A DNA stretch of 64,000 nt from assembly GCA_002811645.1 (NCBI GenBank), contig PDIP01000045.1, forward strand, positions 91,801 to 155,800, given 5' to 3'. Each line of letters opens with the position of its first letter. Position 1 is the first letter of the stretch. Both the position numbers and the translations under genes were made by a program. Source of the DNA: Corallochytrium limacisporum Hawaii (lineage: Eukaryota > Protista > Pluriformea). Of this stretch, positions 8,601 through 56,119 are shown piece after piece. The notes under the pieces were generated by a model, which saw only the letters and a program-made list of their open reading frames with translations, made no database searches and was not told where the DNA came from.

Positions 8601-8779
8601 GTCGGGCCTCCCTCACGGGCCTGAGCTTCGCATGCGTTTTCGTCATTAACATCGGCGCAAAATGTCGTCGTCGTTGTTTCGCTAGTTGTTTGATAACAGC
8701 AAGCTGTTGCACCCGATACGCTTGCTGTCAAAGCAAGCAGACCGAAGACCAAAATGAGGATAAGTTTTATGTTCCCCAT
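5684..8779 (-). CDS. Receptor tyrosine kinase with laminin-type EGF ectodomain and Eph-like kinase domain (1031 aa from first ATG)
   Basis: First ATG at 8779 (agcATGg) begins a signal peptide (IKLILILVFGLLALTASVSG). Cys-rich LE repeats follow (e.g. CNCDATGSTSTICDKETGDCTCMFQFTGRRCDTC), then a TM helix WFAVTIALVALLVLGGIVYAVY and RRRRR. Kinase motifs: LGSGAFG, VAIK, HRDLAARN, DFG, PVRWTAPE, DVWSFG. Confidence 0.95.
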   Translation of the reverse strand: MGNIKLILILVFGLLALTASVSGATACCYQTTSETTTTTFCADVNDENACEAQAREGGPTAPWEFFANVTCGDYFQCFQEDEDGCRINYPDSEPLCVADCPDDTYCECAVPQQGADVITGCRLLTTCNPTGTRAAGGANEPCVPADGCATRENPDGAGVVCSCLDAYTGDSCDQCADGYWAAQDTVIGEKVCVACNCDATGSTSTICDKETGDCTCMFQFTGRRCDTCQEMFTGTNCADCADGYFPSGADAQTCSACDCIEDRALSDICDSSGKCKCETQFSGDKCQICAEGYTGDNCDQCQKGFWNRGTGESILCVACDCQLESTVDSICDVTNGQCQCQTSYTGPQCKACDYNVPVSDNVCLERRGEVSPSDGGSSNVTDQTWFAVTIALVALLVLGGIVYAVYRRRRRSVKDESDTNDTPSNGRTSGESANGGVAIAIPGEGDDSLEHGRTGDRHATLRTVASDNSNYSQLSMPSPGEKPMNGSANAYDVPFGDLDTEAREDVFVSHSRTFNGGKMARARHQAGSRSQPYLRSGIVLGAAGALAAAQSSRMRRTGSATRNSNGSPMSSNHSMGSFKPIPVQKGLSDPGDYDHPLHGPSYTTPEALAAMSPKGTSPMRQSAVGKHQHGSLGHVIDPEWELPRDRITIDEHLGSGAFGDVWQGRWMGFGYGDEPLPVAIKTLQQDSDDEKRIAFFEEAELMKRFSHPNIVQLFGVSTLVEPQMIVTELLEKGSLSDVLKTDSANLSVSRLMCMALEIAQGMSYLESQSFVHRDLAARNILVGEGYICKVADFGLSRVMEDDQYITRGGQIPVRWTAPEALKYRRFSSATDVWSFGVLLWEMYSYGERPYKDMRNEEVVAAIDSGYALPKPEGCPPVMHDLMLQCWRLDPDERPTFAELLSQLQQLVMQQKRAGVQIDTLQTESTRRRHEYMMLARRELLDYVARDGGYKTPRVGVPTEETNEYMEPTDSGIRVTANVSDVNSKLLDPDDYDNAADKSGTLGDENEMDTLHEDVVPDNDYRSLPTDDFPVP

Positions 8780-10240
8780 GCTGAGTCTTTGCGTATTTTC
8801 CGATATATGCGGGTTCACCACATTCTTGAAAGCATCTATACCATGACTTATTCAAATCAGTTTCTGATCACTTGGCTTTCCCGTGTTGCGTTCTGTCCCT
8901 AAATATTCTTTAGCCGTAGAATTTCCGAATGTATGTTATTTCTGGATATGGGTTATATGCGACGAAGTAATGAACACCCTCAAAAGTATATGTCGCCAAT
9001 AATAGTATTTGATTGTAAGTTAACGGGAAAAGTAATGATCTATCTAGAGTGAATTGTCAAGTACTTGTTCTCATGTAGGTTCATATTGACAGGGATTTCG
9101 ACCTTTCATGTGGCTTATGATCTATCATTCAATACATATAATTCTAGAACAAGTGAATACATTGAAACTATTCTTCTAACAATCTTCCAATCTACATAAT
9201 GTTGGAGACACTCGGGCATTCCATACGGTCATGAACTCTAGACATAAGAAATATAAACAGCGTGCGTACCCAAAAACTGTTCTCAAAAGAAGGGAAAAGG
9301 GCCTTACAAAGGGGACCAGCCCCCAAGAGATCACAGTATCTCTGGCCAGTTTCAAACAGACGCAAACTGTACCGATCGGCTGCCAAATCCCATATAGTAT
9401 GTACTGAAGTGCGTCCCCTCCCAGTTCCCTCCTTGGTGATTCATTTCTCCTTGCAGTCTATGTCAGAACGTTCCTTTTTCTGAAGCGAATTGCAGAGCAA
9501 ATTTTTCTTGAAGAGATAGCTGTAAATCATTGCTATATCCATTCATTAGGTACTCAATGGATTGGGCAAAAAAAACACCGGGAGAGGGAGGAGGTAGAGA
9601 GGGTTTGGAAACAGACGACGCTAGGGACGTGACGTTCGCCCTCTGCTCGGTTTCTTTCGTGTTCCTCGCCTCCCTTTCTGCGGTTCGCAGTCCCTCTGGT
9701 CTGCTTTCGTGCCATAGTGAGCTGCTGTGTGGAGCATCCGAAACATATTGCGAGACAATCTGGAACAAGGCAGGTATAGGGGAAGAGTGCCAGTCCCTGT
9801 ATGCGTGTCGTGTGGAGAGGGTGATGATCCTGGGACCAACCCGCTTGTGCTTAATCTACATTTCTCAAGAAGCAAAAATAAACCTATGTATCCACTATGC
9901 ACAAGCCATTAAGGATATTTGGAAAGGCCCGGCGGATAGAGAAATTATCGGGAACTATACGCGATGGGGAGACTCAGCAGCCGAAGGGGGGGGGGAAGGG
10001 AGACGGGCAGCGGGGAGGGATGCAACGGAAAGACAAGTCAGGCGACCAGAAGAACTAGCAGGGACAGCTTCGCAGGTCCTTCCTCCCGTTTGGAAGAAGC
10101 CAATGCTTGACCGGACTGGTCTCCAAAGCTCTATATATTGGGTACTGAAAAGTCACTAGCCGTTGTGGGAGAGGTGTTTCGAATGTGTTTCTGTGTGGGC
10201 GCGCAAAAACGTGCCTCAGTGAGCCGCGGGGGGGGGGGGG

Positions 10241-19743: not shown

Positions 19744-21003
19744 CTAGTGCATGACTTGGCCCGAAGGATTGCGCTGCTGCGTTTTGCGCGAGTTGTACTT
19801 CATGGTCCGATTCGACGTCACTGTGAAGGGTTCGGCATCTAGTAACAACAGACCACCGCTGGCAAGGTCCACACGCGATCGTGCTGAGGTTGCCGATGTG
19901 TCTTCCATGCTTGTAGCGAGCGATGACCGCAGCAAACGACCGCCTCTTGTCCGCGGATGGACTCCAGGCCCTGGCCTACACATGGTGCCTCTGGCCTTGA
20001 CATCACCAATCGTGGCTGTTGGCAGCGTCTTTAGTGACCTGAGCTTCCCGTTGGTGCCCTGGCTGGCATTGCTGCCAAAGCTCTTATGATGTTCCGAGCT
20101 ACTGCTGTCACTCGCTCTGAGGGCAGTCACAGCTGGTGAGGATTTCGACGGTCCATCTGGGCAGTCACTGTCCCGACCGCCTTCGCCTCCCAAAAAACCG
20201 CCAATGTGTCGGCCTTCAGTATGAAATCCGACCAGCTGGTTCTGTTCCGGTTGATCTGCATTATGTTGAGACGGTCCCGGAGAAATCCTTGACCTTCCAT
20301 TGGCAACCGGTAGCCCGGCCCAGCGGACCCCATGTGAATGACGAGTTTCTCGAAGGGCAGTACAGCTTGCGCTGAAGCCAGACGGTGGTTGGGAGGGTTC
20401 GAAGATCTGACGCGGGACCTGCCTGCGGATTGACAAACCGGTGGCATAGCGCTGCTGCCGTTCGCGGATGGCCAGATTCTGCGGGACGTTACGAGTTGGA
20501 ACATCAGCCACGGTCAGACCGAGTGTACCGGCGTCGTCAACCTGTGCGTGGCCAGTGACAAGGACCTGTTGATCTTTAGCCTTGGCGACATCATTCACGG
20601 TGACGGAACCCAGGCTGTGAGCGGTACTGGTAAACGGCGACCCTGAAGAATTTGAGTGATTGGACGAAGTCATGGCCATGCGATTCAGGGCCGCCCGAGA
20701 ATAATCGATGGCCCGAGTCTGCACCCACACAGCCATGCCGTGCTCCTGGAGAGCCCGCATGTTTTCGATCCGCTGCACAGCCTGGCGCACCACCTCATGT
20801 TCCTCGTCCGTGACTTGCTTGGTGTCAATTAGGCGCAGCTTTGGGTTCCGGTAGATCAGGATGCTTGCGAGCGACCTTCTCCGCGACGTGTGTCTCGATG
20901 GATGTGACTTGAGCAGCATCACGTCCCTGTCGACACTGATCCCCCGGGTCGAGACTCTCAAGGTAAACGACCTGGGACAGGGGCTTAGTCCGAACGGGTC
21001 CAC
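19744..21003 (-). CDS. Hypothetical protein or 5'-degraded gene with LRRcap-like motif and Ser/Gly/Arg-rich disordered C-terminus
   Basis: 419-codon open frame, first ATG at 20919. ILIYRNPKLRLIDTKQVTDEE resembles the LRRcap consensus. The frame is closed upstream by TAG in ctttag|gtg, and no intact LRR exon is visible. Confidence 0.45.
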   Translation of the reverse strand: MDPFGLSPCPRSFTLRVSTRGISVDRDVMLLKSHPSRHTSRRRSLASILIYRNPKLRLIDTKQVTDEEHEVVRQAVQRIENMRALQEHGMAVWVQTRAIDYSRAALNRMAMTSSNHSNSSGSPFTSTAHSLGSVTVNDVAKAKDQQVLVTGHAQVDDAGTLGLTVADVPTRNVPQNLAIRERQQRYATGLSIRRQVPRQIFEPSQPPSGFSASCTALRETRHSHGVRWAGLPVANGRSRISPGPSQHNADQPEQNQLVGFHTEGRHIGGFLGGEGGRDSDCPDGPSKSSPAVTALRASDSSSSEHHKSFGSNASQGTNGKLRSLKTLPTATIGDVKARGTMCRPGPGVHPRTRGGRLLRSSLATSMEDTSATSARSRVDLASGGLLLLDAEPFTVTSNRTMKYNSRKTQQRNPSGQVMH

Positions 21004-23347: not shown

Positions 23348-24598
23348 TTATGCCATGTAAATCTGGGCAACGCCGACAAAGGCACCGAGGACGCCACCGA
23401 TGAGAATGAGCTTCCATTCGTCCTGCTCGAAGACGGGGTGCAAGACGCGCTCGTAGCGTTCTGGCGGTAGATCGGCCAGAGCTTTGTGAATGGTAGGCTG
23501 CAGTGCAAGTGCCTTGTCGGCATAATCTTTGATGAGGGGGATACCATTGGGTAAATCCGCGATGACAAGATCCATCATTTCCTTCTTAGATTTCTCGTAT
23601 TCTTCGTCACCAATGGTACGGCGCATTATGTCGTTGGCTGGCAGAGCATCCATGGTCTTTCCCAGCTCCCGGAAAATCAGCTTGTGCAAACGATCTCTAT
23701 GAGGACCCAGGGTGATCGCCTTCAACATTCGCTCAGCGGTCATAACCTCCTCGCACACAACAAGCGAGTACTGATATGAGACTTCGGGCTGCCGCTTGAT
23801 GAACAGGCCCTGAAGCGGGTATCCACAGATGTTCCTGGGGTGGATGGGCAGGAAAATAACCTTCAGTGCAATATAGTTGGTGAGGTAGCCTATCGCAAAA
23901 CCAGTAATCGGGAACCACCAGTACTTGGCATCCGGATAGTCAGCCAAAAAGGACAAGACAACCAGATAGAAGACAGTAAATACAATGCCGAGAGCACCGC
24001 CAACCCAGAACCCGGACCGCTCCAAGAACCGCAGTTCCTTGTAGCCGAGCCGCTCGAACATATCAACAAGCAGACCGGGCTTGGCGCTGAAAATTTCGAC
24101 AACCATGTCTCGCAGATCGTAGAAGCTAAGAGGATCGTTGCGGATCTCGTCCATGACTTTCTGGATCAAATCAGGGACATCTTGGCGCAAGTCCTCAAAA
24201 ATATTCTGCTTGTCTTTTTCGTTCAGCGCCGCCCAAACCGCAGGCAGACGCTTGGAAATGACCTCATCCATGGCCTTCTTCAAAAGGTAGTCTCCACGGG
24301 GAGCCAGATGGACCGCAACTTGTTCAGCATCCAATCGTTGGATAATGTCCTTGGGGTTAATGAGCTCCAACATAGTGTCGGTAGCAATATTGGCCATGAA
24401 GACTGCCTTGTAGGGAACAATGCCCTGCCATCCGAACCCGCAGTTATCGAAAGGTGCTACACCGAAGGGTTTCCCGATGCCAAAGAACTTAATAGGGTAG
24501 AAGCAAAGACGGATACCGACGACATTGGTAAGGTAGCCGACAATACCAGATATCAATGGCAGACATATATATGAGATTACGGTCACAGCGTCAACCAT
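23348..24598 (-). CDS. DUF445-like membrane protein with internal duplication (416 aa from ATG 24598)
   Basis: GYLTN...F.PI...GWQGIVP, a second GYLTN...FLPI...LQGLFIKRQ, and C-terminal VFEQDEWKLILIGGVLGAFVG. The upstream in-frame extension runs through CA/GT microsatellites and is not credible as coding. Confidence 0.8.
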   Translation of the reverse strand: MVDAVTVISYICLPLISGIVGYLTNVVGIRLCFYPIKFFGIGKPFGVAPFDNCGFGWQGIVPYKAVFMANIATDTMLELINPKDIIQRLDAEQVAVHLAPRGDYLLKKAMDEVISKRLPAVWAALNEKDKQNIFEDLRQDVPDLIQKVMDEIRNDPLSFYDLRDMVVEIFSAKPGLLVDMFERLGYKELRFLERSGFWVGGALGIVFTVFYLVVLSFLADYPDAKYWWFPITGFAIGYLTNYIALKVIFLPIHPRNICGYPLQGLFIKRQPEVSYQYSLVVCEEVMTAERMLKAITLGPHRDRLHKLIFRELGKTMDALPANDIMRRTIGDEEYEKSKKEMMDLVIADLPNGIPLIKDYADKALALQPTIHKALADLPPERYERVLHPVFEQDEWKLILIGGVLGAFVGVAQIYMA

Positions 24599-24608
24599 GT
24601 TGACGACT

Positions 24609-24834
24609 GTGTGTGTGTGTGTCTGTCTCTCTGTGTATATAAGTGTGTGCGCTCTATAGGTCTGACGAACCCTGCACGCCTCAACTACCTTAAGAACGGC
24701 CAGAGTCTCAAGTAGCTGGGTAGCTCTTCCAGCAAGAAAGTCGATCGCACATAGATATTCTGCAATCCGCCACATTATGCGGCTCGCCAGAGTGTACCAT
24801 GAAGTGCCCCAAACTGCGTGTGTGTGTGTGTGTG
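24609..24834. repeat. Short (TG)n microsatellites upstream of the DUF445 gene
   Basis: TG dinucleotide runs at about 24609-24622 and 24817-24834; a CA-rich run also lies at about 25616-25640. Confidence 0.8.
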
Positions 24835-26874
24835 CACGCTCGTTCGATGGCACTTTCCATATTTTCTGCACGTCCGGCTGGGTACACACCCAATCTCGGG
24901 GACCCAGACGTCAACTGGGTCCACTGCCACAGGAACTACTCGCCGCACTGCAGCCAATGGGTCCCTTTTTTTTTTTGCCCAAGCCATCTTGTTCGGTTTT
25001 TGTCTGCGACTGACAACCGGTTCCGAGATAAAGGGGCTTTGGCGGGCCGGGGGAGCGCACCGCGGGAAGAGAAGGAAGGAAGGTTTAGGGAAATAAAAAG
25101 GAAGGAGAAAGGCGAAGGGGGGGGGGAAGGGGACAAGCAAGGCAGAGAGAGCTTGCAGGAAAGGGGGGAGCGGCCAAGCGGGCCAATTCTGGCTACTTTC
25201 ATCGATTGCGCTCCCGGCCCATCATGACCTGACACCCCCCCCCCCTTTGCACGTCAGCCATTTGTTGCGTACGGCAGATAACGAACATCCTGGAGTGAGT
25301 TTTAATTCTGTGTTTTCTTCTATTTTTCTCAACGTTTGCAAAAAATCTTATCGTCGTTTGTCTCATTTTCCTGGACGTGGCCCCACTCCCTTCCCCTTTT
25401 CTCCCTTGTCCACCCGATGGATTCCAAAGCTGTTCTCTAACGCTCCATATTGCGCATTGCCGACCTGTGGATGATGGGACACGATCACCGTTACCTGTTT
25501 TCTGTTTCTTTTCTTGGGTCCCTTTTGTCTACACAGTTTTCCCTTTTGTTTCCCTTGGTCAGTTTTTGGTCATACTCAGTCGCACGCATACACGCGTACA
25601 AAGCCGCGGTTTGCTACACACACACACGCACACACGCACGACCCGGGGGCGGGAGTTCGTCAGTTTTTGCCTTGTCGCCTCCCCACAGCGGGAACGCCTT
25701 GTGGTGCGAGAGTGGGCACCAGGATCGGGTCGGCAGTAAGAAAAGAGGAAACCACGGGTACACAGCGGAAAACAGGGGAACAAGAGAAAAAAAGGGGAAA
25801 GGAAAAAGGGGGAAGGCAGGTCTGAGTATAAAACACACGTACCAACGAAATCAGAGTGTTGGTATTTGGAGAAAATGGAACCTGGGCCCCGCCGCCCACC
25901 TGCCCTTCCTTTTAGCCCACCACCCGCTTCGTCGCCGTCGTCGCTCGGGTTCTTGGGACCTGTTCGCAAGGGGTTAACACAGTTTCATTATGAATTTCTC
26001 AGGTGGGAGCGTATCGCTGTGGCAAAGGGGACGGAAAATATTGATTGTATACATCATTGCGCATGGCCAGTGGCTGGTTCTTTGTCGATCAATATTATGT
26101 GCGTCCTGCGACAGTTCAGTACATTCAGTATTGAGGTCGGTGGGTTGCTGGGGGAGACCGTGTGCAGTCATTCCACAAGCGAGGGAGTCTTGTTTTAACA
26201 CCCCCCCACCTCACCCCAGGGCACCCCCCCCGGGGGGGGGGGGTTCTTCGGGGAAGGGGGGAAAAGCGCTGTGTGCCGGCAGAACCCGTAATGGCTGTGC
26301 AGCATTGTCGTCATTCATTCCTGGCGTTAGAGGCGTGGTTATGATTACGGACTCTGGTATTCACGTACAAAAATTCATTATCCAATAAAGGGTTTGAGGA
26401 GAATGACAAGAACCATGTGTGGAAAACATGAGTGCGTATCAGGGGATATGGTACAACACAGAGTATGCCTAGATCAGTGCCAGGCGGGAAACCGGTACCA
26501 CGGCAGTCTCCGCCGTGATTGCGACGACTAGACAAGGAACGGAATCAGGTGCTAGCGAGGCTAGAGACCGAGCTGGTTTTACTTCATGATCATGCTGCCC
26601 GGGAGGAGATGGCAATGCTGGCAAAGAGCGATACCGGAGGTTGGCCTCGCGGTAGTAGTTGTTCCTTTTACGTTAACTCCAGTGTGTTGACTACTGCAAT
26701 CTATAGGATTTGGAAGGCACAGCATCGGCCGGAAGCAAGCAGGTCTTGTAGGACTGCCACATAAGAGTAAATTGACCATGATTTTCAGTTTTATGGATTT
26801 ATGACGAATATTGGTTAGTCTGATATGATGTGATGGGGTGTTTGTGATTTTCAATGTATGGGCGGGTATAATGA

Positions 26875-29800
26875 TCAGTTCTTGCTGCGCAGACGAGAAG
26901 AGCGGCGGACAGGAGCTGCCTCGGCATCGTCTTTCACAGTGGCGGCCTTCTTGGGAGCAGAGGCTTTTTTGGGAGCGGCACGCTTTTTGGCGGTGGGCTT
27001 CTCTTCCTCCTTGACGTCTTCCTTCTCGGCGACCATCTTGCTGGCGGACCGCTTCTTGCCTACAGTCGAGGTCTTTTTGGCAGTGGTGCGCGTGGTTTTG
27101 CTCGTCTTGGCGGATTTCTTGGCCTCGTCTTCCTCGTCAATCTCAGTGACAGTCTCAAAAGTCTTCTTTTCGACAGTTTCGGAGAAACTGACGTGTTTGG
27201 TGTTGCTGGTCTCCTTCTTTGTGGTAGCACCACGGGAACGGGTGGTGCGTTTGGTCAAAGGCTTCTTCTCTTCGGCCACAGACTCGTGAATGGCTTCGAC
27301 CGCTTTGGCGGCTGCACGGCGAGTGGTACGCCGCTTACGCTTCTCCTCAACCTCGGGTTCCTCGTCCTCATCAAGTGTCACTGCCTTGGCACGCTTACGA
27401 GAAGCACGCTTGGGCTTGTCCTCTTCTTCCGGCTCCTGCTGGAGCAGCTCAGCGATAGCCAAGGCAGCAGCAGCATCAGCTACGTTCTCCTCAGGTTGCT
27501 CCTGCTTCTCCACTTGGAGCTGCAGGTTGGCCAAGACCTCTTCGGTTGCGGCCTGCACTACCTCATCGGGAACTGTACGCAGTTTGAACCGTCCAGACTG
27601 AATCTCGTCGCGGACAGGAGTGGACAAACTCTTCTTGTAGACCTTGTTGAGCGTTTTACCCTCCTTGATAGATTTGCGGGTGGGAGTGTCGAGACTCGCC
27701 CTCATGACCTTCGTCAGCTTCTTGCCCTCCTTGATGGATACACGGCACGGAGTGTTCAGGCTCTTCTTCAAAACCTTGTTGAGCTCGCAACCATTTGCAA
27801 TTTGTTCCTTGAGAGGGGTTTGCATCTTTTGAATGGTCTCCTCCGCCTTTGGCTCCTCGGCCTCGACCTCTTCCTTCAGATCTACCATAGCAGGCACCGA
27901 CTTGAGAGCCAACTTTTTCTCCTTAATCTCTTCACGGATTGGAGTCGACAAACTCTTCTTGTAAACCTTGGTCAGACTCTTCCCTTCCTTGATGGAGTCA
28001 CGGGTAGGCGTATCCAGACTCTTCTTCAAAACAGCGGTCAGCTGCTTACCCTCCTTGATAGACTCACGGCAGGGTGTGTTGAGGCTCTTCTTCATAACAG
28101 CGGTCAGCTGCTTACCCTCCTTGATAGACTTACGGCAAGGTGTGTTAAGGCTCTTCTTCATGACGGCCGTCAACTTCTTGCCGGCACGAATGGACTCACG
28201 AGCAGGTGTGTTGAGGCTCTTCTTGAGCACAGGATTCAATTTCACCTCCTGGTCCTCGATGGCCTGTTTCAATGGAGTAGCAATCTTCTTGGTTTCCTGC
28301 TCTCCTTCGGCAGTAGGCTCTTCGTCCACCTCAGGCAGCTGGCGTACAGAGCGGAGCTTGCGGCGAGGCTCCTCGCTGCGCAACTCCTCGCGGATGGGTG
28401 TACTGAGGCTCTTCTTCATTGTAGGCTTCAATTCCTTACCAGCCTTGATGGCGTTCCGAGTGGGAGTATCCAAGCTCTTCTTCATGACCGTCGTCAACTT
28501 CTTGCCAGTTTTGATTGATTCGCGAGTGGGAGTGTCCAAACTCCTTTTCATGACTTTAGTAAGCTTCTTACCTTGCTTGATGGAGTCGCGGCAAGGAGTG
28601 TCTAGGCTCTTTTTCATCACAGGCTGCAATTCTTTGCCGCCGGCCTGAATGGCGTCACGAGTGGGAGTATCCAATGCCTTCTTCATAACCTTGGTAAGTT
28701 GTCTGCCCTCCTTAATGGATTCGCGACAAGGCGTGTTAAGGCTCTTTTTCATCACTGGTTTCAGTTGCTTCTTGGTGGTAGATGCCTCCAGTTGCTGGCG
28801 CATCGGAGAAGCCAAGCGAGCGCTGCGGCGGACGGGCGATTGATTGGGCGAATCCACATCCATTGGCTCAGGATTCTGAGGACTCACGGTTTGGTTCACG
28901 GCGTCGACACAAATTTCCTCCGTGGGTTCTGCCATTTGCTCTTTCTCAGCTTCTTCAGTGTCATGCTGAGGTTCCACATCCTCCTCATCAAGAGCTTGCA
29001 TTACCAGGCGCTTCTCCTTAGCGGCACGAATCTGTTTCTTCAGGGGGGTTGTGAGCACACGGCGGTACAAACTGGTCTCTTCGCGTTCACTGCGAATAGA
29101 CGCACGCTCTAAAAGGTCGTCGTCCATGATGTCGTTGGTGATGTCCTCAATTTTGCCCTTGGAACCGCTCTTCGGGGTCGCCAATTTTTTCTTCAGAGAC
29201 GCAGGCATCACGGCAGAGTATACAGGTGCTGGGGAAGAGGGCTCCATACTTTCAGTGCTCTTCTTCAGAGCAAAATTGCCACCGTTGATTTCCTTACGGG
29301 CAGGTGTGGGGAGCGCCTTCTTGTACTGGCTGCGCAGTCTCACATTCTTGGCCTCGATGTCCCTTTTCAATGGGCTGTTCAGAGCCCGGCGAACAACTTT
29401 CTTAATGTCAGCGCCCTTCACAGTAGGGCTGTGGACCTTGCCATCCTCTTCCATGAAGCTAGCAGCAAGTTCCTTTTCAAGCCTGCGCTGGCGCGTCCGG
29501 CTCATCATAGTCCCAGTGCGCTCGATATCCTGGCGCATTGGCGTAGGCATACGGCGGCGACTAGGGCTCAGGATACTCTGGCCTGTGCTGGAACGTCCCG
29601 GTGCCTTCAGTCCACGCTTTGTGGGGGAGTCAGGAGGCATGTTCTTGTCAAACTCCTGAGGAGCGAGTTTGTCCTGAGGGTACCAAGTGACCGACTTGGA
29701 AGGTGAGGAGGGAGCAGCGGTGTCGTCGTCATCGCCGAAGTCAATGAGATCACCCTGCACTTCCTCAACAATGGCCTCATGGACAATTTGCTTAACTTCC

Positions 29801-30540
29801 TCAACCTTGGTGGTCACAGGAGTGGTAGGCTTGGATTTCTTGTTGGCACTGGCCCTGCGACTGGAGCGACCACTTGGACTGGGCAGAGGGTCGTCCGGCG
29901 TACGCATGCCGTCATTCATAAGATCAAAATCACCTCCATCATTCACGTCAACCAGGTCTTCGTCACCTTCCTTGCGTCCAAAGTTCGCCAAACTCGCAAA
30001 GTCAGGGCTGTTGGATGCCGTGTGCTGTCCTAAGGGCTTGCGCTGCTTTGGGGTACCTGCACGGGCGGGTGACTTCGTAACAGCAGGACTGGCGCCAGCA
30101 TTTTCTTCATTGCCTCCGTTAAGTACTGCGTATAGCTCAATTAGCAGCGGACGGTCACCAATCGTGACAACATCCTCATGCTTTAGCATTACCTTGTCCA
30201 CAATCGGACGCTCGTTCACATATGTCTTGGCCGAGCTATCAAGAGGTTCCAGGAACAGGGCCTTCTTACCACTGTCGGTACGGTCAACGTAGAATTGACA
30301 GTGGAAAGGCTGGACATCACCCTTCTTGACCTGCACAGAGCAATCTTCGGAGCTACCGCAGGTGGTTGGTTCATGGAGCTTGGACAAAATGTCCAGGCAA
30401 ACGGCAGTGCGCTTCTTGGACTTCTTCTTCAGACCAGTCAGCTTTGCAAAGGGCTGCAGCGCAGCCCTCGCAGGGGTTGTGGACCTTGAGCGCCGCTTAG
30501 GCGAACTCAATGGACTGCCAAGAAAGCTCAACACGTTCAT
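26875..30540 (-). CDS. Ki-67-like protein: FHA domain, Ki-67/RepoMan-type PP1-binding motif, tandem 22-aa TPx(R/K) repeats, basic C-terminal tail (1221 aa)
   Basis: First ATG at 30540 (aaacATG). The FHA ends VMLKHEDVVTIGDRPLLIE (human Ki-67 VRLKHGDVITIIDRSFRYE). KSVTWYPQDKLAPQEFDKNMPPDSPTKRG aligns with Ki-67 RRVSFGGHLRPELFDENLPPNTPLKRG. A repeat array and a K/A/T-rich tail follow. Confidence 0.85.
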   Translation of the reverse strand: MNVLSFLGSPLSSPKRRSRSTTPARAALQPFAKLTGLKKKSKKRTAVCLDILSKLHEPTTCGSSEDCSVQVKKGDVQPFHCQFYVDRTDSGKKALFLEPLDSSAKTYVNERPIVDKVMLKHEDVVTIGDRPLLIELYAVLNGGNEENAGASPAVTKSPARAGTPKQRKPLGQHTASNSPDFASLANFGRKEGDEDLVDVNDGGDFDLMNDGMRTPDDPLPSPSGRSSRRASANKKSKPTTPVTTKVEEVKQIVHEAIVEEVQGDLIDFGDDDDTAAPSSPSKSVTWYPQDKLAPQEFDKNMPPDSPTKRGLKAPGRSSTGQSILSPSRRRMPTPMRQDIERTGTMMSRTRQRRLEKELAASFMEEDGKVHSPTVKGADIKKVVRRALNSPLKRDIEAKNVRLRSQYKKALPTPARKEINGGNFALKKSTESMEPSSPAPVYSAVMPASLKKKLATPKSGSKGKIEDITNDIMDDDLLERASIRSEREETSLYRRVLTTPLKKQIRAAKEKRLVMQALDEEDVEPQHDTEEAEKEQMAEPTEEICVDAVNQTVSPQNPEPMDVDSPNQSPVRRSARLASPMRQQLEASTTKKQLKPVMKKSLNTPCRESIKEGRQLTKVMKKALDTPTRDAIQAGGKELQPVMKKSLDTPCRDSIKQGKKLTKVMKRSLDTPTRESIKTGKKLTTVMKKSLDTPTRNAIKAGKELKPTMKKSLSTPIREELRSEEPRRKLRSVRQLPEVDEEPTAEGEQETKKIATPLKQAIEDQEVKLNPVLKKSLNTPARESIRAGKKLTAVMKKSLNTPCRKSIKEGKQLTAVMKKSLNTPCRESIKEGKQLTAVLKKSLDTPTRDSIKEGKSLTKVYKKSLSTPIREEIKEKKLALKSVPAMVDLKEEVEAEEPKAEETIQKMQTPLKEQIANGCELNKVLKKSLNTPCRVSIKEGKKLTKVMRASLDTPTRKSIKEGKTLNKVYKKSLSTPVRDEIQSGRFKLRTVPDEVVQAATEEVLANLQLQVEKQEQPEENVADAAAALAIAELLQQEPEEEDKPKRASRKRAKAVTLDEDEEPEVEEKRKRRTTRRAAAKAVEAIHESVAEEKKPLTKRTTRSRGATTKKETSNTKHVSFSETVEKKTFETVTEIDEEDEAKKSAKTSKTTRTTAKKTSTVGKKRSASKMVAEKEDVKEEEKPTAKKRAAPKKASAPKKAATVKDDAEAAPVRRSSRLRSKN
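27571..28749 (-). repeat. Coding tandem repeat, ~66-bp (22-aa) unit, 16 copies in three blocks
   Basis: Unit KKSL(N/D/S)TP(C/T/I)R(E/D/K)SIKEGK(K/Q)LT(K/A)V(M/L/Y). Two near-identical 66-nt copies lie at about 28021-28152. Confidence 0.95.
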
Positions 30541-31005
30541 GTTTGTGTGAATGCTGATTCCCAATCTTACGATTCTTTACCCGAAATGTCTTTTTCGCTT
30601 CCTCCCGAATCCCCGTGGAGTACTTCTTTCTTGCCCATCCACGACCTCAGATCCCTAATTATTCTCTCTCTACCTCCAAATACCTTCTAGGTTGCTAAGT
30701 CTTAGCGTCTACCATGTCAATAGCCCGAACACAATCTTTGGCTACTGTGCTCATCTTAACTGCCTTGCTACAATGAGACCCGACGGACGGGTCTTTCCCG
30801 GTCTTCACCAAAGGAGCTCTCTGTACGTAAACCTGTACTGTGCCTATTTACTGTGCTGTGTGCACTTTTGAGACCCTCCTCATGAACTAACAAGGAAAAA
30901 TCGTCTCAAGGCCCGGCACAGATCAGTTGCAGTGTGCACAAAAATATTATCGGTACATATCGGGTACTTAAGCCGTGAATCCAAGACATGCCCACCAGTC
31001 TGTAA

Positions 31006-31174
31006 CCGCCAAAAGAATGGGCACCTCGCGCCGGCTTCCTCCGCGAAATATTGCCCAGCGTTTTCCATAGCGAGTGGGTGCCAGATCCACCCTTGGCCCC
31101 TTCCCCTTCTCTATGGGGGGGTCTCCGCCACCGGTAACCCCGCTTGCCCTATCTCAAATTTTCGGCGCCAAAAA
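31006..31174 (-). promoter_or_regulatory. Cluster of three E2F-like sites, one followed by a CHR-like hexamer, upstream of the Ki-67-like gene
   Basis: Minus strand: TTTTGGCGG (31014-31006), TTTCGCGG (31048-31041), TTTTTGGCGCCG-AAAA-TTTGAG (31174-31153). Confidence 0.55.
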
Positions 31175-31502
31175 TAAAGCGGAACTAACCGGGTCCTCTC
31201 GCTTTCCGAAGTTCTCGTAAGGACTGGCTGCAGTATATACAGTGCTGCCCGGGGGAGAATACCACCGGTAGAAAACACATACTTTGGCGAGGACCGTGGC
31301 TTGATGTCAAGACGAGGCGGAGGCGAGGCAGTATTGTCCCTTGGTGCGCCGTGTGCTCGGACACTCTTGCAATTGTCTCAAGCTCGCGAGGCAGGAGATG
31401 CATGTATGCACACGCTAAAACGAAGAGTAGGTCCTCACATCTGTTCCAGATGTACGTACGGTGGGATGCTCTATTCTATGTATTTGTATATTGTTACAAC
31501 GG

Positions 31503-34500
31503 TTACACTGACTGGTCAACACCACGTTGGGGCATGGGCATGTTCTGAACACGCACATTGTCCATATTGTCCGCGTTGATGCCACGAATGTCCTGGGGAG
31601 TGATGATAATAAATTGACGATGATCGCGACGTTCGGCAGCACGGACCAGGATGTTGAGGGCCTTAATGCGGTTGATAGTGTCCATAAAGACATCAAATTC
31701 GTCGAGGATATGGAAGGGAGTTTCCTGCGTAGACCAGAGAGACACAACGAATGACACAGTGGCCATACTCTTCTCACCGCCCGACAGCTGACTCACTTCG
31801 CGGAATGCATTGTCTTGGCCGTTCTGCATGAGAATCTTGATGGTCCTCTCCGCGGCATTGATTCGCAATTTCGCCACGTAGTTAGCCTGGGATGCAGACT
31901 GCTGGAAGAGCTGATCAATGCGGTCTCGCGCAACATTTGCAATCGAATGAAATTTCTGTTTCCGCTTTTCATACATGTCCGGAAGAACTCCGTGAAGATT
32001 GCGCAGCTTTGTGTAGATTGAGTTCATATCCTCGTATTCATGTTTCATGGTGTCGTAGGTCTGCAAGATGTCATTGATCTCGTCAGCAGATGGTGCATGC
32101 TCTAGGTCATCGACGATGTTCTGGATGTCTGTCCTCACCATGTCGGGATCACGAACGGTTGAGGGTTCCTCCCCAGGATCCTTAAACTCTCTATGCAGCT
32201 TCTCTGTCGCTTGTTCAGCCTTTTGAGTTGCCCGCTCCAACTTTTTCCGGTGTTCGTCCAAAACACTACCGATCTCGTCTACTTTCTTGAGCTCCGCAGC
32301 ATGTTCGGTCTTCTTTGCCTTGATCCGATTCTTTAGATCTGTCATACGTTCATGGATACTTTGCCGCTGATCACTGATATCCGGTGCAGAGTTCACCGTC
32401 TGTTGAACCCTTTGAGTAGCCTCTTCCGTTTTTCTTCGAGCTTCTCTGAGATGCACCCTAGCTTCGTCGATTCGAGAGTGCAGATTCTCTAAACGGCGTT
32501 GGGCAACACGGAGGTTTTCTTCTTCTTCGGCGTTCGCACTATCAATTCCTGTCATGAGGAAGTCTTGAAGCTGCTGTACCTCCGCGCTAAGATCACGTCG
32601 TCTTTTCTGTTCCTCATCGTACTTACGGTCTAATTCAACCATCTCACCCTCGGCCTGTTCTTTTTGAGATCGGCTGGATTGTGTGATCCTCTCCTGTTCT
32701 TTGACATTCTCCTCGGCCTGTGCAACCTCTCCCTGCAGCTCCTCGAGACTACCTGCCCCAGTGCCTGCCCAGCAAGCAGGCAATGATCCGGAATGCTGAT
32801 AGGACATGTACTGAGCGGCCTGAACCTGATCACCTGTGTGCAAGAAAGCAATTAGTCTTTTGGACCTGTGCCGATCAACAAACTCTTGAGCAGCCGTGCG
32901 TTCCGGAATGGCAAAAGCACTGGCAAGGGGGGTGTTGTCGATGAAGACAGTCAAAATCAATCGCTTCTCAAATACGTCACACTTAAAGTCAAGCAGATCG
33001 AGCATGGGCTTATATCCCTGGACACGTGTGATCTTTGATGAAGGGTCCTTAACAGATTCAAACGGTCGGGAAAGAACTCTCGGGCGTTCTGAGGGATCAA
33101 GCTTCAGTTTCTTAAAGATCTGATCCAAAACCTTGGCGTCCTTGCTCGAGTTGACGATGTAGTGCGAAGGAAGGACAGGGTGCGCGTGGTGAAAAGCCTT
33201 GGCATATTCTGGCTCTTGGATCTCGAAATGGCGCCCGATGGGACCGACAGGCGAGCGACTGAAAGCGTTCTTCTGTCTGTCTATCTCCGCAAGAATTTTT
33301 TCAGTGTGCTGGCCAAACCTGAGCAAGGTGTTCCTTTGTGACTGCTTGCGAACCTTCAGGTCCTTCACCAACGTTTCCTTTAACGCGCGCAACTCCCTGA
33401 GCTTATCGTTCGCATCCCGGAAGGAATCTGAGTATGCTCTTGCCTTTTCTTCACAGCGTTGTCGGTCCAATTCCAGTTGATTGACAATATCTTCGACACT
33501 GGCTAGTTGTGTGCGAACGTCTCGAAGATTCTCTTCCGCTGTAGCACGCTGCTGGTTACCACTATTCTGTGCGATACTCTGTTGACGGGACTCAACCTCT
33601 CGGAGCACAATATCGTGATTATGTTGAAGATCATTCAAGGTCTCTTCTTCTTGCTGCTTCTTCCTGGCGGCAAGCCTCGCCTCCTGCTTAACCTGCCGAA
33701 GCTCTTGCTGGTGCTGCTCTTCTTGTTCAGCAAGGTATTGAGCCTGCTGCCTTTCTGAATTCATCTGGTCTTCGAACTCACTGATCTCAGCCACCAAACG
33801 ATTGACCTCCTCATTGGCATTCATCTGTTCATTCTCTCCCTTCTCTTGTCGGCTTCGTAGCTCACGACATCTCTTCACATACTTCATCAACTCAGACCAC
33901 GCGAGCTCTAATTGAAGATCACCCAGTCGGGTCCTATTCCGAGCGACAGACTCAATCTTCTCAACCTTCCTCTCTTCTTCCCTTACTAGTTCCCGCATAT
34001 TCTGCAATCGCCCATCACGATCTTGAAGCTTCGCCTCTAGGCGTTGTGTACATGCGTCGATATTTGTGAGTTTCTCCATTAACAAGTCCAGTAGAGAGGC
34101 AGACCCAAAGAGATCGTACATGCCACGTTCACCTGCATTAGCCAAGAAATCCCTTGCCTTCTCTTGTGTGAGAACGGCAGCTGGGTTATCAACCATAATA
34201 TTGAAGTGGTCAAGGATCTCGTTCAGGTCCCTCTTCGACTTTGACACAATCGGGAATCGCGGCGCGGAATTGTTTTCAGGACGTTTCTCATCAATTTTTC
34301 GTTCGTATTTCATTATTTTGAATCCTCCCTGCCCATCTGCAGAAATATCTCTCTGCACAACAATAGCATCGCCATATTCATGGTATTTGTATGGATTGCC
34401 ATTACCATCATTGTCAATCACAATCTGAACCACAGCTCGACGACAACCATGTTTGACCAGATTTCGAATAGACTCTGCACGGGCCGTTTCCTTCGCACGC

Positions 34501-34829
34501 GCCCCGAAACAAATTTGTAACGCGGTCACAATCGCACTCTTACCGCTGCCGTTGGGGCCCAAGACGAAAGTGATCTTCTTCCCGAACTCCATGGTAAAAT
34601 GTGAGTGGCACATGAAGTTCCAGACCTCAATGCGCCACAGCTTCCCGGAATGCTTCTCAGAATCTTGCTTCTGAGTTAGTGAGCCCGTTTGTGTCTGTGA
34701 TAGTCCTTCGTTCTCAATCCTTGCCTTTTTCTTCCCGCGTGACCGCGAGGAAGACTGTGTCACCTCTTCTATGCTATGGGCCACCATCTTCCCTTGGTCA
34801 CTGATGACCCCCTGCCCACTTCTTTGCAT
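31503..34829 (-). CDS. SMC6: Structural maintenance of chromosomes protein 6 (1108 aa)
   Basis: NFMCH, Walker A GPNGSGKSAIVTAL, coiled coil-hinge (PVGPIG)-coiled coil, signature LSGGEKS, and the SMC6-type Walker B/D-loop PFHILDEFDVFMD. Confidence 0.93.
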   Translation of the reverse strand: MQRSGQGVISDQGKMVAHSIEEVTQSSSRSRGKKKARIENEGLSQTQTGSLTQKQDSEKHSGKLWRIEVWNFMCHSHFTMEFGKKITFVLGPNGSGKSAIVTALQICFGARAKETARAESIRNLVKHGCRRAVVQIVIDNDGNGNPYKYHEYGDAIVVQRDISADGQGGFKIMKYERKIDEKRPENNSAPRFPIVSKSKRDLNEILDHFNIMVDNPAAVLTQEKARDFLANAGERGMYDLFGSASLLDLLMEKLTNIDACTQRLEAKLQDRDGRLQNMRELVREEERKVEKIESVARNRTRLGDLQLELAWSELMKYVKRCRELRSRQEKGENEQMNANEEVNRLVAEISEFEDQMNSERQQAQYLAEQEEQHQQELRQVKQEARLAARKKQQEEETLNDLQHNHDIVLREVESRQQSIAQNSGNQQRATAEENLRDVRTQLASVEDIVNQLELDRQRCEEKARAYSDSFRDANDKLRELRALKETLVKDLKVRKQSQRNTLLRFGQHTEKILAEIDRQKNAFSRSPVGPIGRHFEIQEPEYAKAFHHAHPVLPSHYIVNSSKDAKVLDQIFKKLKLDPSERPRVLSRPFESVKDPSSKITRVQGYKPMLDLLDFKCDVFEKRLILTVFIDNTPLASAFAIPERTAAQEFVDRHRSKRLIAFLHTGDQVQAAQYMSYQHSGSLPACWAGTGAGSLEELQGEVAQAEENVKEQERITQSSRSQKEQAEGEMVELDRKYDEEQKRRRDLSAEVQQLQDFLMTGIDSANAEEEENLRVAQRRLENLHSRIDEARVHLREARRKTEEATQRVQQTVNSAPDISDQRQSIHERMTDLKNRIKAKKTEHAAELKKVDEIGSVLDEHRKKLERATQKAEQATEKLHREFKDPGEEPSTVRDPDMVRTDIQNIVDDLEHAPSADEINDILQTYDTMKHEYEDMNSIYTKLRNLHGVLPDMYEKRKQKFHSIANVARDRIDQLFQQSASQANYVAKLRINAAERTIKILMQNGQDNAFREVSQLSGGEKSMATVSFVVSLWSTQETPFHILDEFDVFMDTINRIKALNILVRAAERRDHRQFIIITPQDIRGINADNMDNVRVQNMPMPQRGVDQSV

Positions 34830-41548: not shown

Positions 41549-42077
41549 TTACGCTGAAAGGTTTTGTCAGATTAAAGGTCGACAATTCAATACATGTATT
41601 ATGTGTCATCCAGCCATAAATGATCGGACTGGCCCAAACTTACGTTATGGCACCACACTGGCCCTCCCCCAACGCACTCTTGCAGAAGGGGACTGGAGAA
41701 ATTGATTTGTCCAGGAGCGCCTCCCACCCGGGAAAGGGGCGCCCACTCCCGCGGTCCTTCTCCGGCTTCCCTCTCCCGCTCCAAATGTTTCACTTTCCGT
41801 TGCCATTGGCTGGAACCAAAACCGGGGGGGTCTCACGACCGAACGCGCTTGCTGCAGCGTCGCTATTGCCCATAGCCCTTCTGCCGTGCCAACGTATTTC
41901 ATACCTCCTCCTCACCTAAGGACAAGTACTTTTTCTGATATTAGTTCAAAACCATGAGAACTTAACTCGGAGATCAATAAAGGCGTTAGTGTGAAGTTAT
42001 ACGGAAGACGCCAATATGTAGTTCAAGTGCAGCGGGAACTTAAACCGCATTTCAAGTTCACCATTCAACAAACCAAG

Positions 42078-44414
42078 ATGATAAAGCTTCCTCTTGATAA
42101 AGTGGAACGAAAATATGATCCCACGCAGGACAAGGAAGACCAGGAAGCAGAAGACATCGAAAAGAGCTTCTTGCAGGGTGGGCTCTCGGAACAGGACAAC
42201 CACCTTAACTCCAAAGACGAGGAGGCTGCCGTTAGCCACAATACAGGCGCGGGAGTTGTTGACGGAGACGATGCTGAAATCGATGATCATGAATTAGAAG
42301 ATCTGGAATATTGTGAAGAAGCGGATGATGAATTCGAAAACGATAGTACAAGTTTTGGAAGGCTTCCTTTCAGCAACGAATCGTCCACAAGTAGCGCTAT
42401 CTTGACAGACAATTACGCACATATGATAGATCAAAAAACATTAGAGTACACAGCGAAGAACAAAGCAATTGGACGAGAAGAGCGGCAGGCACCGACGGCT
42501 CTTGATGCTGACCTTGCGGACTTCACTTTTGAAATCCAGAGTGGGGCCGGGCGCCTTCGTAAGAATTCTTTCATGGACGATGAGAGCCTCTTGCAGAGGA
42601 ATCCGTCCACGGAATCACACCCCAGAGAAGATGAAGTGGCCAAAATCTATTCGAAAGTCCGCGGAAAGCAGCCATTGGTGCCACTGAGAAGCGTTCCGAT
42701 GCGTGAGCTTAGTGCAGAAGATAGGAACATAGAGATTGAGTTTGGAATGCACCACAGTAGACCGCAACGACTTCGCAGACCGAGTCAAGAATCAGGTGAT
42801 CTTCAAGCTGAGCTTACAGACTATCTAGCAAGCATTGACAACGACCCCTATATGGCGAATCATGTAAGTGAAGCAAGTGGAATCGGTGGGGTGGGTATAG
42901 ATGTCTTTGATCCAAATCCGAAACCTGCATTGATAGATCGCACAAATCACCTCTTTGGTGAGGGTGATGTGGACCTGGTAAGAAATTACCTGCGGACCAT
43001 TGCATCGCAAAGCTCGCGGGCAAGACGGGCTGATGCACCAATCTTGGTGGTACCGATGGATTGGAAAGCGGCACGCGTGGCCGCGGAGGCAACCGGGTCC
43101 GCCCATGGATCAGTGTACCGTGCATTTGAGAACCCGAACGTTGCTGAACGTATTGAATCATTGGACAGATACGGAGAGCCAGCGCGGTGCGGTACCTTAT
43201 ACATCATTCCTGGCGATGGACAATCAGGGGATGGTGGGGCGATGGCCGGCCACTCCAGCAATTTTGGATCGCGAGGTCAGGACCTGGACGATGATACGCC
43301 CATTCGAGGTGAAGCCATTGGACCACCACATGGTCACCAACGCCTGGCTGGCCTTATCAGCCATGGTCACGTCTCGCAGACAGGGCCCGAACTTCATCAC
43401 TCCATGCTCCGAAAGGTGCCAATTGAGCGCATTATCTCGGCACGTCACGAAGATCACTCAATCGCGGAAGACATGGGACTGACAAATTCACAGAGTCAAT
43501 GTGACCAGAATACGAGCCGCAGCGTGTCTGTACTACCTCTCAATATGCAGCTAAGCAATGCGACGGATGTGAGCGCAGATATTAGCAGCGGTGGCGGTAG
43601 TGGACAGATTCCCAGTAGCGAGGGTGAACGTGCCACTGTGACGCCAGAGATGCCAAACCCTCAACGCAGCACCGCGCCAGCGACCATGAGCACGACAAGT
43701 GCTTCTCTTCCGTCCATGAGCGGGCCGCCATTGGCACTCCCACCACTGACGTTAAAATCATCAGGCAGTGGAGGCCAGGGTACACTTCATGGCGACCCCT
43801 CTTCAGATATTATTGGCCTGGGCAGCGGCAATACCGGCCCGCAAAGTAGCGGAAGCATTGTAGGGCAACAGCATCAGAACCAGAACCAGGCACCCATCAC
43901 TAGTATCATGAAGCAACCTCAGTCAGTATCGCACCCGATGGTGGCCTCTCGGAGATGGAACAACAATTCCAATTCCCAGGAGATGGCTTTGCGGTACACA
44001 GGTGCGTCGGTTGACACGAAGTGGACATTAAGCGGTGAGACACCTCGGAATGACCTGCCAAAGCGCAGACTTACCGACGACTCCACTGTGCCGCCAGACC
44101 TTGGTATGGATTCTAATCCAGTCGGCCTCGAGGCAACCTTGTCCACTACCGCTCACGACCAAGAGCTTCAGCACCCCGTCTTTCAAGAGCCGAAGCTCAA
44201 CGATGTAAGGCTAAACTCCGTGGTCACGTCTACTGGTGGTGGTGGAGGAAGTGGAAGTATTACGGCGCGGTCTAAGCGGTCCTACGAGGCGGGCGACTTT
44301 CTCGAATGGTGCAAAGAACAGGAGGAGTTGTTACGTGAACTTCATGTTGGCAACCAACCCCACAATCACACCCCCGCAGCAGCAATTCAACGGTCATCCC
44401 TCCCGGGCGGCTGA
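42078..44414 (+). CDS. Hypothetical, largely disordered acidic/Ser-Gly-rich protein (778 aa from first ATG)
   Basis: Long uninterrupted ORF, ATG in caagATG context, no recognisable domain. Short possibly folded segments lie in the centre and near the C-terminus (YEAGDFLEWCKEQEELLRELH). Confidence 0.75.
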   Translation: MIKLPLDKVERKYDPTQDKEDQEAEDIEKSFLQGGLSEQDNHLNSKDEEAAVSHNTGAGVVDGDDAEIDDHELEDLEYCEEADDEFENDSTSFGRLPFSNESSTSSAILTDNYAHMIDQKTLEYTAKNKAIGREERQAPTALDADLADFTFEIQSGAGRLRKNSFMDDESLLQRNPSTESHPREDEVAKIYSKVRGKQPLVPLRSVPMRELSAEDRNIEIEFGMHHSRPQRLRRPSQESGDLQAELTDYLASIDNDPYMANHVSEASGIGGVGIDVFDPNPKPALIDRTNHLFGEGDVDLVRNYLRTIASQSSRARRADAPILVVPMDWKAARVAAEATGSAHGSVYRAFENPNVAERIESLDRYGEPARCGTLYIIPGDGQSGDGGAMAGHSSNFGSRGQDLDDDTPIRGEAIGPPHGHQRLAGLISHGHVSQTGPELHHSMLRKVPIERIISARHEDHSIAEDMGLTNSQSQCDQNTSRSVSVLPLNMQLSNATDVSADISSGGGSGQIPSSEGERATVTPEMPNPQRSTAPATMSTTSASLPSMSGPPLALPPLTLKSSGSGGQGTLHGDPSSDIIGLGSGNTGPQSSGSIVGQQHQNQNQAPITSIMKQPQSVSHPMVASRRWNNNSNSQEMALRYTGASVDTKWTLSGETPRNDLPKRRLTDDSTVPPDLGMDSNPVGLEATLSTTAHDQELQHPVFQEPKLNDVRLNSVVTSTGGGGGSGSITARSKRSYEAGDFLEWCKEQEELLRELHVGNQPHNHTPAAAIQRSSLPGG

Positions 44415-54277: not shown

Positions 54278-54350
54278 CCCTTCCCCAAAGGGGAACGTCC
54301 CCCCAGAAACGTCCTTCTTCCCCCCCTTCCCCAAAGGGGAACGTCCCCCC
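54278..54350 (+). repeat. 27-bp direct repeat (2 copies), each containing a TTCCCC-AAA-GGGGAA hairpin
   Basis: cccttccccaaaggggaacgtcccccc at 54278-54304 and 54324-54350. Confidence 0.85.
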
Positions 54351-55684
54351 AAAAACCCCCTTCTTCCCCCCCCCCCCCAATCTTTTGTGCTCGTCTACTA
54401 AGAATACGCCTTGTGGATACTGACAAACGGAAGAGAGGAGCCATGTACATTGAACTGCCCTGCATTCCTGTCCAAGGTGTGTGCGCGTGTGGACATAGCG
54501 GATGGTGAAATTGCTTGCGGTGTGGCGTTCACAGAAAGGCCGCTGAGCAAATCAAATGAAGCATACACCCATCACCACCTGGCCACATCCACCATGGTGC
54601 ACTCTATACGTTTGTGCGGCATAAACTGAGTGCCGTGTGCATGCTTGCACCCTGTATCAAACTTCTCACGTCCACCTTCCTATGTCTTTTTTTTTTCGAT
54701 GGGCATGTGCGCTCGTGACGGCGTTCGTCGGTAAGGAGTTCGCGTACTGGACAGTTCCGTTCGTTCTATCTACACTTTCGCAGGTCAGCAAAGCAGATCA
54801 AAAGCGCGGGATTTTTTTTCGCTTTCGCGATTTTTTTGCCACCGCGGAATAAACAGATCGACGGAGAGGGGAATCGCAAAGGAACGCCAGTGTGTGGAGT
54901 ACGGGAGGAAGAGGAGAAGAAAAAAATATGAGGAAAAGTTGGAGCGACACGAACACACACGCAGCAAAACCAGAATCAGAAGCCGTTCCTACACCCACCA
55001 GGGAAGAGTTGAGAGAAAAGGCAAGGGAAAGTAACCAATATAAAACATCCGAGCCGCCACTACCCAGTGACGCGGACAATCGCCAGCAGAGAAACAGGAG
55101 TCATCGACGGACGATATCGCAAACCTCGGAAGAACCGAAGTGGACAAAGGAAAAAATGGGCAAAAACCCTTCCCCCCCCCTTCCCTCTTCGTCCCCCCAA
55201 AATGAAATGAGAACAGCAGAATCTGATAGCCATTTGTATCCCATGGCGTTGTACCCTCCATTTTCAAGCTTTCGCTTATTCGGAAGCGGGTGGAAATGCC
55301 AACCGAAAGCGGTTCCCTGGAGAAGCGCGAGGGAGAGACACAAGGGCGGGAAAGGGTAGCGAAGCGAAGAGCCCCGGCGATAAAGAAAAAAAGGAAAAGG
55401 GAAAAATAACCCCAACCTTGAGTCTTCGGGTGTCCATTTCATGTTTGTTACGCCGTGACTTTTTTCTTTCCTTTTAATTTCCTGCGGCGGCTGGTCGGTT
55501 TTTCTTTTTCTTATATCTGGACTCCAAATTTCTACTTTTCTGAGATTCTCCTCATTGGTTCACTATGCACAACAGGTTTTTTACTGGATTCTTCTTGGCC
55601 CGGTGGTTAAGGTGTGCGTTCTTTATTCTCCCTTTTGCTTCTGTTCCTCCCGGAGGGGGGGGGAAGAGGGTGGGATCCATCCCC

Positions 55685-55965: not shown

Positions 55966-55980
55966 CCTCTCTCTGTCTCA

Positions 55981-56014
<34 letters not shown>

Positions 56015-56119
56015 GTCTCACTCTCTGTCTCTGTCTCTGTCTCTCGCTCTCTCTGTCTCTCTCTCTGTCTCTCTCTCTCTGTCTCTCTCTCTGTCTCTCT
56101 CTCTCGCTCGCTCTCTCTC
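55966..56119 (+). repeat. Compound (CT)n/(CTGT)n microsatellite
   Basis: About 150 bp of ctctctgtctct... upstream of the 704-aa gene. Confidence 0.95.

Follow-up and report, generated by a model that had tools for sequence, protein, structure and literature searches.

Bridgin was described as a fungal kinetochore linker with an FHA domain, a PP1-binding site, repeats and a basic tail, and Ki-67 was named as its metazoan homologue (Sridhar et al., 2021, PMC7794384); a review extends the bridgin/Ki-67 homologues to Amoebozoa (PMC9252888). The row 'Bridgin/KI-67' in the source data of Fig. 1 of Shah et al. (2024, PMC11153136) contains Monosiga, Salpingoeca, Capsaspora and several ichthyosporeans, as well as Spizellomyces, Dictyostelium, Physarum and Corallochytrium (Clim_g3504). 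A preprint of June 2026 (bioRxiv 10.64898/2026.06.18.733134) deals with Ki-67-like proteins over a range that starts with tunicates and reaches Capsaspora, Monosiga, fungi and Thecamonas; the entries of its Table 1 that were consulted do not include Corallochytrium. The present work concerns a gene of the unicellular holozoan Corallochytrium limacisporum Hawaii, located at positions 26875-30540 on the minus strand of a stretch of 64,000 nucleotides (the window; GCA_002811645.1, contig PDIP01000045.1, positions 91,801 to 155,800). Its membership in the Ki-67/bridgin family is hardly in doubt, and by profile searches we were able to show that it is the single Ki-67/bridgin orthologue of this organism. 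Moreover, its 22-residue repeat is very likely homologous to a 21-residue repeat that the Ki-67 proteins of sponges, cnidarians and choanoflagellates carry, as judged from the cross-species matches described below.

The preliminary description of this locus had proposed a pre-metazoan member of the Ki-67/RepoMan family in a non-animal, intron-poor genome. Matches to profiles built without the query bear out the presence of a Ki-67-family member in such a genome. The pre-metazoan inference is right in outline but not new, since homologues outside animals, including those of fungi and amoebozoa, have already been published, and the origin of the family predates Holozoa. The label RepoMan (CDCA2) is unfit because RepoMan shares only a PP1 segment of about 40 residues with Ki-67 (PMC5005033); an FHA domain and repeats are present here, and the likeness of RepoMan to the Corallochytrium protein is limited to the RVxF and KiR-SLiM segment. 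Nor can it be maintained that the gene dates a chromosome-periphery module to the time before animals, as bridgin, the sole characterised non-animal member, is a kinetochore linker. The published Clim_g3504 is given by identifier only, without analysis; it is very probably the same gene, because no other locus of the genome matches all three Ki-67 profiles.

The gene consists of a single exon. The open reading frame is uninterrupted from 26875 to 30540, and its first ATG at 30540 leads to a protein of 1221 residues with a computed isoelectric point (pI) of 9.68 and 40 S/T-P sites, in which FHA domain, PP1 site, TP repeats and basic tail follow one another in the direction of the minus strand. 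The genome of C. limacisporum was published in 2017 with a size of 24.1 Mb and a reduced intron content (PMC5560861). The gene is apparently expressed: contigs of two sequencing runs, whose RNA nature was guessed by the tool and which are uninformative on strand and true ends, span approximately 26430-30610 (coverage 26427-30614) with no intron joints, and the coverage drops to zero across the intergenic region 30675-31422 upstream of the gene. In a second strain, represented by one putative RNA run (X4), 15 coding single-nucleotide polymorphisms were found in the reading frame, 13 of them synonymous, and the gene is under purifying selection between the strains. The repeat copy number also varies between the strains, as X4 carries one additional 66-bp repeat unit at 28429-28484, where the joint steps back 56 bases with 10 added letters. 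The exact 1221-residue sequence was absent from the protein collection searched, though seven neighbouring proteins were present, and the public gene model may differ from our reading frame in its start or structure.

The assignment to the Ki-67/bridgin family follows from the fact that three separate profiles built only from homologues (FHA, PP1 site and repeat) pick this gene from the genome. The Ki-67 FHA profile ranks it first (E 3e-12, with 7e-4 for the next gene), the PP1-site profile has it as its single match (E 1e-5) and detects no second PP1-site gene in the genome, and all 14 matches of the repeat profile lie inside it. The jellyfish Sanderia Ki-67-like protein was the sole full-length match among the candidates scored (E 4e-33), and a search of representative sequences brought up further proteins under the name Ki-67, from Oscarella, Taenia and spider. 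All general features that the preprint of June 2026 names for Ki-67 are present in this gene as well.

The N-terminal FHA domain seen earlier in the sequence was confirmed at 30136-30444 (residues ~33-135) by Pfam PF00498 (residues 59-128, 44.4 bits, E 2e-11) and by PDB sequence matches, the top ones being the FHA domain of human Ki-67 (E 0.001). An AlphaFold2 model fits FHA folds in a fold search that is unable to rank FHA subfamilies and placed Ki-67 seventh. In the ESM Atlas the N-terminal part found FHA clusters only below 0.9, and the repeats gave no usable match. Phospho-threonine is bound in FHA domains by a conserved arginine and a conserved serine. In our alignment the canonical arginine (G-R) is replaced by serine and the serine (S-x-x-H) by glutamine, and therefore this FHA domain has probably lost the ability to read phosphopeptides containing phospho-threonine. 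The FHA domain of vertebrate Ki-67 binds phospho-NIFK; a profile search of the genome for hNIFK_binding revealed no match above the cut-off. Four further FHA genes were found in the genome by profile search.

The PP1-binding segment was located exactly where the preliminary description had placed it, at 29611-29697 (residues 282-310). It is composed of the RVxF-type word KSVTW (residues 282-286), which lies downstream of the FHA domain and fits the RVxF pattern given in the preprint, a hairpin with a two-residue insertion and a divergent KiR-SLiM. In the PDB the segment matches nothing but the peptide of Ki-67 in its complex with PP1 (5j28_C, E 0.026). Nine of the 14 KiR-SLiM positions defined in PMC5005033 are kept, a value reached by none of 2000 protein shuffles. 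Since the cyclin-dependent kinase (CDK) sites S279 and S305 flank or interrupt the segment, PP1 binding could be gated by CDK. The PP1-gamma residue R20 sets the isoform preference of Ki-67 (PMC5005033), and the PP1s of this genome have Arg or Lys at the residue mapped to it in our analysis. Two equal-scoring PP1 copies lie on opposite strands of contig C251, separated by about 38 kb (5934 on the plus and 43814 on the minus strand), which represents either an inverted duplication or an assembly artefact, and a third PP1 is found on C242. Two environmental proteins carry two KiR-SLiM-like PP1 segments each.

The long TP-rich repeat array was likewise confirmed. About five degenerate TP repeats (T333, S389, T412, T498, S578) are embedded in a predicted disordered linker at 28750-29560, followed at 27568-28749 (residues 598-991) by 16 copies with a period of 22 residues in three blocks of 6+6+4, with the consensus KKSLxTPxRxSIKxGKxLxxV and a net charge of +45. 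Every repeat carries one full CDK consensus site, S/T-P-x-K/R. The central region is basic (pI 9.5-10) and, judged from its composition and from the low confidence of the AlphaFold2 model of the repeats (predicted template modelling score 0.23), probably disordered. By computation, full S/T-P phosphorylation would shift the net charge of the protein from +66 to -14. In Pfam the array also drew matches to TFX_C, ATP-synt_ab_C, SAVED, Asp23 and COMPASS-Shg1, which we discounted as artefacts of summing scores over repeats. The C-terminal region at 26878-27420 (residues 1041-1221) has no S/T-P sites and had been called a Lys/Arg-rich tail; it is indeed basic (pI 10.1, net +21), but of mixed charge instead of purely basic. 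It contains a second RVxF-like word at residue 1115, and its RRSSRL-type end resembles the ends of several homologues, by analogy with which the tail may bind chromatin.

Several observations weigh against the family assignment. The Pfam PP1_bind model, named as a check in the preliminary description, reached only 14.3 bits at a curated cut-off of 27 and had no match in the whole genome. The KiR-SLiM, with its nine positions against 10-13 in the homologues, is the most divergent among the family members compared, and the genome gave no match to a profile made from the GLKRL-x-KTP motif of invertebrates, which is a weak negative. In maximum-likelihood trees, the other check named, the FHA domain was placed outside the clade that ten Ki-67s from animals and choanoflagellates form; forcing it into that clade was not rejected, however (approximately unbiased test, p = 0.33). 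The alignment comprises about 109 columns, the outgroup was chosen for its likeness to the query, close unicellular and fungal orthologues were not included, and neither of the two trees, the first with and the second without two very long-branched FHA domains of the same genome, resolves the placement. One might think of an FHA protein without relation to Ki-67 that acquired its low-complexity features by convergence, or of an animal contaminant contig, for which the position in the FHA tree and the sub-threshold PP1 motif would speak. Such an explanation has been largely refuted and we consider it highly improbable: three separate regions in the correct order indicate one family, the repeat homology is well above shuffled controls, the window is gene-dense, intron-poor and present in three studies of one organism, and EukProt contains exact entries for seven neighbouring proteins, none of which has a relative at 90% identity.

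The homology of the repeats was revealed by a hidden Markov model of the Corallochytrium copies, which detected 17 copies in Oscarella Ki-67 (265 bits), 21 in Sanderia Ki-67 (199 bits) and seven in the protein of the choanoflagellate Mylnosiga, whereas shuffle controls, including those with the TP sites held fixed, did not exceed 16 bits. All 46 further proteins found via the sponge array, among them those of Geodia and Mylnosiga, were matched by this model, and no match was obtained in the tunicate, spider and tapeworm Ki-67 proteins. On these profile matches we have high confidence in the homology of the repeats. A conserved repeat of 21-22 residues may go back to the Ki-67 of the holozoan ancestor; it is found today in Corallochytrium, in choanoflagellates and in both sponges and cnidarians, and it was not detected in the bilaterian and tunicate homologues tested. 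The preprint of June 2026 gives repeat lengths of 21x21+ for Monosiga and 23x19 for Amphimedon, states that there is no sequence conservation in the disordered part and calls the function of the repeats unknown. In the literature searched, no description of a repeat homology across phyla or of the WH2 likeness discussed below was found. Ki-67s of the cnidarian type have two kinds of repeats in series, the 21-residue TPLR..I..G..LRKT and, later, GLKRL-x-KTP, which resembles the end of the human Ki-67 motif (PMC8354752); tapeworm and tunicate Ki-67s show only the GLKRL-x-KTP kind. The Corallochytrium protein has only the 21-22-residue kind, which suggests that this kind is the older one.

Compared with the Ki-67 proteins of Oscarella (XP_065828196.1), Sanderia (EP00794_P005604) and Mylnosiga (EP00047_P024096), the Corallochytrium protein has a common domain order, a KiR-type PP1 segment, a homologous TP repeat and a basic pI; it differs in an FHA domain without the phospho-threonine-binding R and S, in the two-residue insertion in the PP1 hairpin and in a repeat that is 22 residues long and more degenerate. 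Neither the GLKRL-x-KTP motif of cnidarian Ki-67 nor the SAP domain of Mylnosiga Ki-67 is found in it. Mylnosiga and similar environmental Ki-67 proteins carry such SAP DNA-binding domains C-terminally. With human Ki-67 (MKI67) it shares the order of FHA, PP1 site, TP repeats and basic tail as well as the charge reversal predicted upon S/T-P phosphorylation. In contrast, human Ki-67 has 3256 residues and repeats of ~120 residues with the FKELF motif, no regular-expression match to a vertebrate FKELF-type motif was found in the Corallochytrium protein, and there is no sequence evidence in it for the LR domain of the human protein. Bridgin (Bgi1) of Cryptococcus neoformans is similar in size (1295 residues) and also has FHA, PP1 site, repeats and basic tail (PMC7794384). 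However, bridgin is a kinetochore protein whose acidic middle is built of Glu-rich 8-residue repeats, whereas the middle of the Corallochytrium protein is basic.

Regarding function, we cautiously incline, at little better than even chances, to the view that the protein might form a CDK-switched, PP1-recruiting coat on mitotic chromatin, a mechanism modelled on human Ki-67 (PMC8354752) and on the anatomy of this protein. A long, disordered, basic protein would hold chromatin through its basic tail; in mitosis, CDK1 would phosphorylate the TP of each repeat, and the resulting change of net charge would produce an extended, repulsive brush that keeps the chromosomes apart in open mitosis. When the cell leaves mitosis, PP1 would be recruited by the RVxF/KiR segment, the sites would lose their phosphates, and the coat would collapse and turn adhesive while the nucleus reassembles. 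In favour of such a coat, C. limacisporum has an open mitosis with centrioles (PMC11153136) and possesses BAF, the basic middle of the protein is of the type seen in sponges and cnidarians and differs from the acidic one of bridgin, and a basic residue occupies the position equivalent to PP1-gamma R20 in the PP1s of the genome. What speaks against it is that species whose mitosis is closed, such as Amoebidium, have orthologues too (PMC11153136), and therefore presence alone neither implies nor dates a perichromosomal role. A somewhat unlikely alternative is a kinetochore linker like bridgin, which would be recruited to the outer kinetochore via the FHA domain and the disordered region, grip centromeric chromatin with its tail and thereby offset a reduced constitutive centromere-associated network (CCAN). 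Bridgin is, after all, the one member outside animals whose function has been characterised, and its order of FHA, PP1 site, repeats and basic tail is identical; CENP-T/W/H/I/K/L/M/Q were scored absent in C. limacisporum (Shah et al., 2024, PMC11153136), and in basidiomycetes the retention of bridgin tracks the loss of linkers (PMC7794384). Yet the middle of bridgin is acidic (pI 4.65) with 8-residue Glu-rich repeats, in contrast to the basic, animal-type 22-residue repeats here, CENP-C and CENP-U were scored present in C. limacisporum (PMC11153136), and absences in such tables can reflect detection failure.

A further reading, which fits either localisation and which we consider quite improbable, is that the array is a CDK-gated tandem WH2-like actin binder, through which the ancestral Ki-67 would link chromatin and PP1 to (nuclear) actin. 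It is doubtful, on present profile comparisons, whether a tandem WH2-like repeat with a CDK site at each helix start binds actin anywhere in the Ki-67 family, and the WH2 likeness of the family repeat should be taken as a lead, not a result. The lead comes from a family repeat profile built without the query, for which WH2 peptides were five of the six top PDB matches (N-WASP with E 7e-5, N-WASP, MIM, WASP and INF2); with the query included, the top four were N-WASP, Spire and MIM, and no WH2 peptide was retrieved with a profile built as a control from the other motif of Ki-67. In the consensus, the positions L(-4), I, L(+6) and T(+9) are spaced exactly as L36/I40/L46/T49 are in WIP, and the spacing L-x3-I-x2-G-x2-L-[RK]-x-T is common to the family consensus and the WH2 motifs of N-WASP, WASP, WIP, MIM, Spire and INF2. 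Among 218 distinct homologue repeats, in which the position of WIP I40 is Ile by construction, that of L36 is hydrophobic in 97%, that of L46 is Leu in 95% and that of T49 is Thr in 75%. The family repeat keeps three of the four WH2 hydrophobic anchors plus R/K and T. Two homologues exceed the Pfam WH2 cut-off on summed score, but summed array scores are equally high for plainly spurious families, and the E-values of single repeats are weak. Moreover, the Ki-67 repeats differ from WH2 motifs in that Arg or Lys stands at the second Leu (WIP L37) in all species, in the TP CDK site at the helix start and in a period of 21-22 residues, shorter than the 28 residues between the WH2s of N-WASP. The Corallochytrium copies are more degenerate from WH2 than the family consensus: they keep the I, L and V anchors, mostly without the first L (the position of WIP L36 is C/T/A in 86% of the copies), Thr often stands for the basic residue after Leu, and they have no WH2 match in Pfam, the PDB or their own genome. 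In the AlphaFold2 model, which has low confidence, the LKKT-like part is covered by a second short helix. A literature search of incomplete coverage for Ki-67 together with WH2 returned nothing relevant. Elsewhere in the genome there are three WH2 motifs of canonical form, which by sequence reading are WIP-like and WASP-like.

Other features of the window include a single-exon gene of the SMC family, SMC6-like by sequence reading, at 31503-34829 on the minus strand, directly upstream of the Ki-67/bridgin-family gene and on the same strand, which is probably a chance neighbour. At 5684-8821 on the minus strand lies a gene for a receptor-type tyrosine kinase with five laminin-EGF repeats; receptor tyrosine kinases with such domains are typical of holozoan receptor kinase expansions. 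A membrane-protein-like reading frame at 23348-24889 on the minus strand shows a weak match to DUF445 (E 0.04), a mostly bacterial family, and long reading frames (419-942 residues) with no credible Pfam match are located at 2186-5014, 19744-21003, 41991-44414 and 56862-58976. At 26214-26253, loose ends of several DNA contigs coincide with an imperfect inverted repeat of a C-run and a G-run, which may belong to a dispersed repeat family. A Wnt search found nothing, a result that the tool itself marks as uninformative. A CT-rich microsatellite and a 46-bp tandem duplication are found at 55967-56119 and 54278-54380, respectively.

Corallochytrium is transfectable, has an open mitosis and a reduced CCAN, and is thus suited to distinguish whether the ancestral protein served as a chromosome coat, as Ki-67 does, or as a kinetochore linker, as bridgin does. 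The conservation of one repeat type from a protist to sponges and cnidarians, with a WH2-like consensus, offers a cheap and direct route to the function of the repeats. If actin binding proved true, the early Ki-67 would have been a cell-cycle-gated link of chromatin, PP1 and actin.

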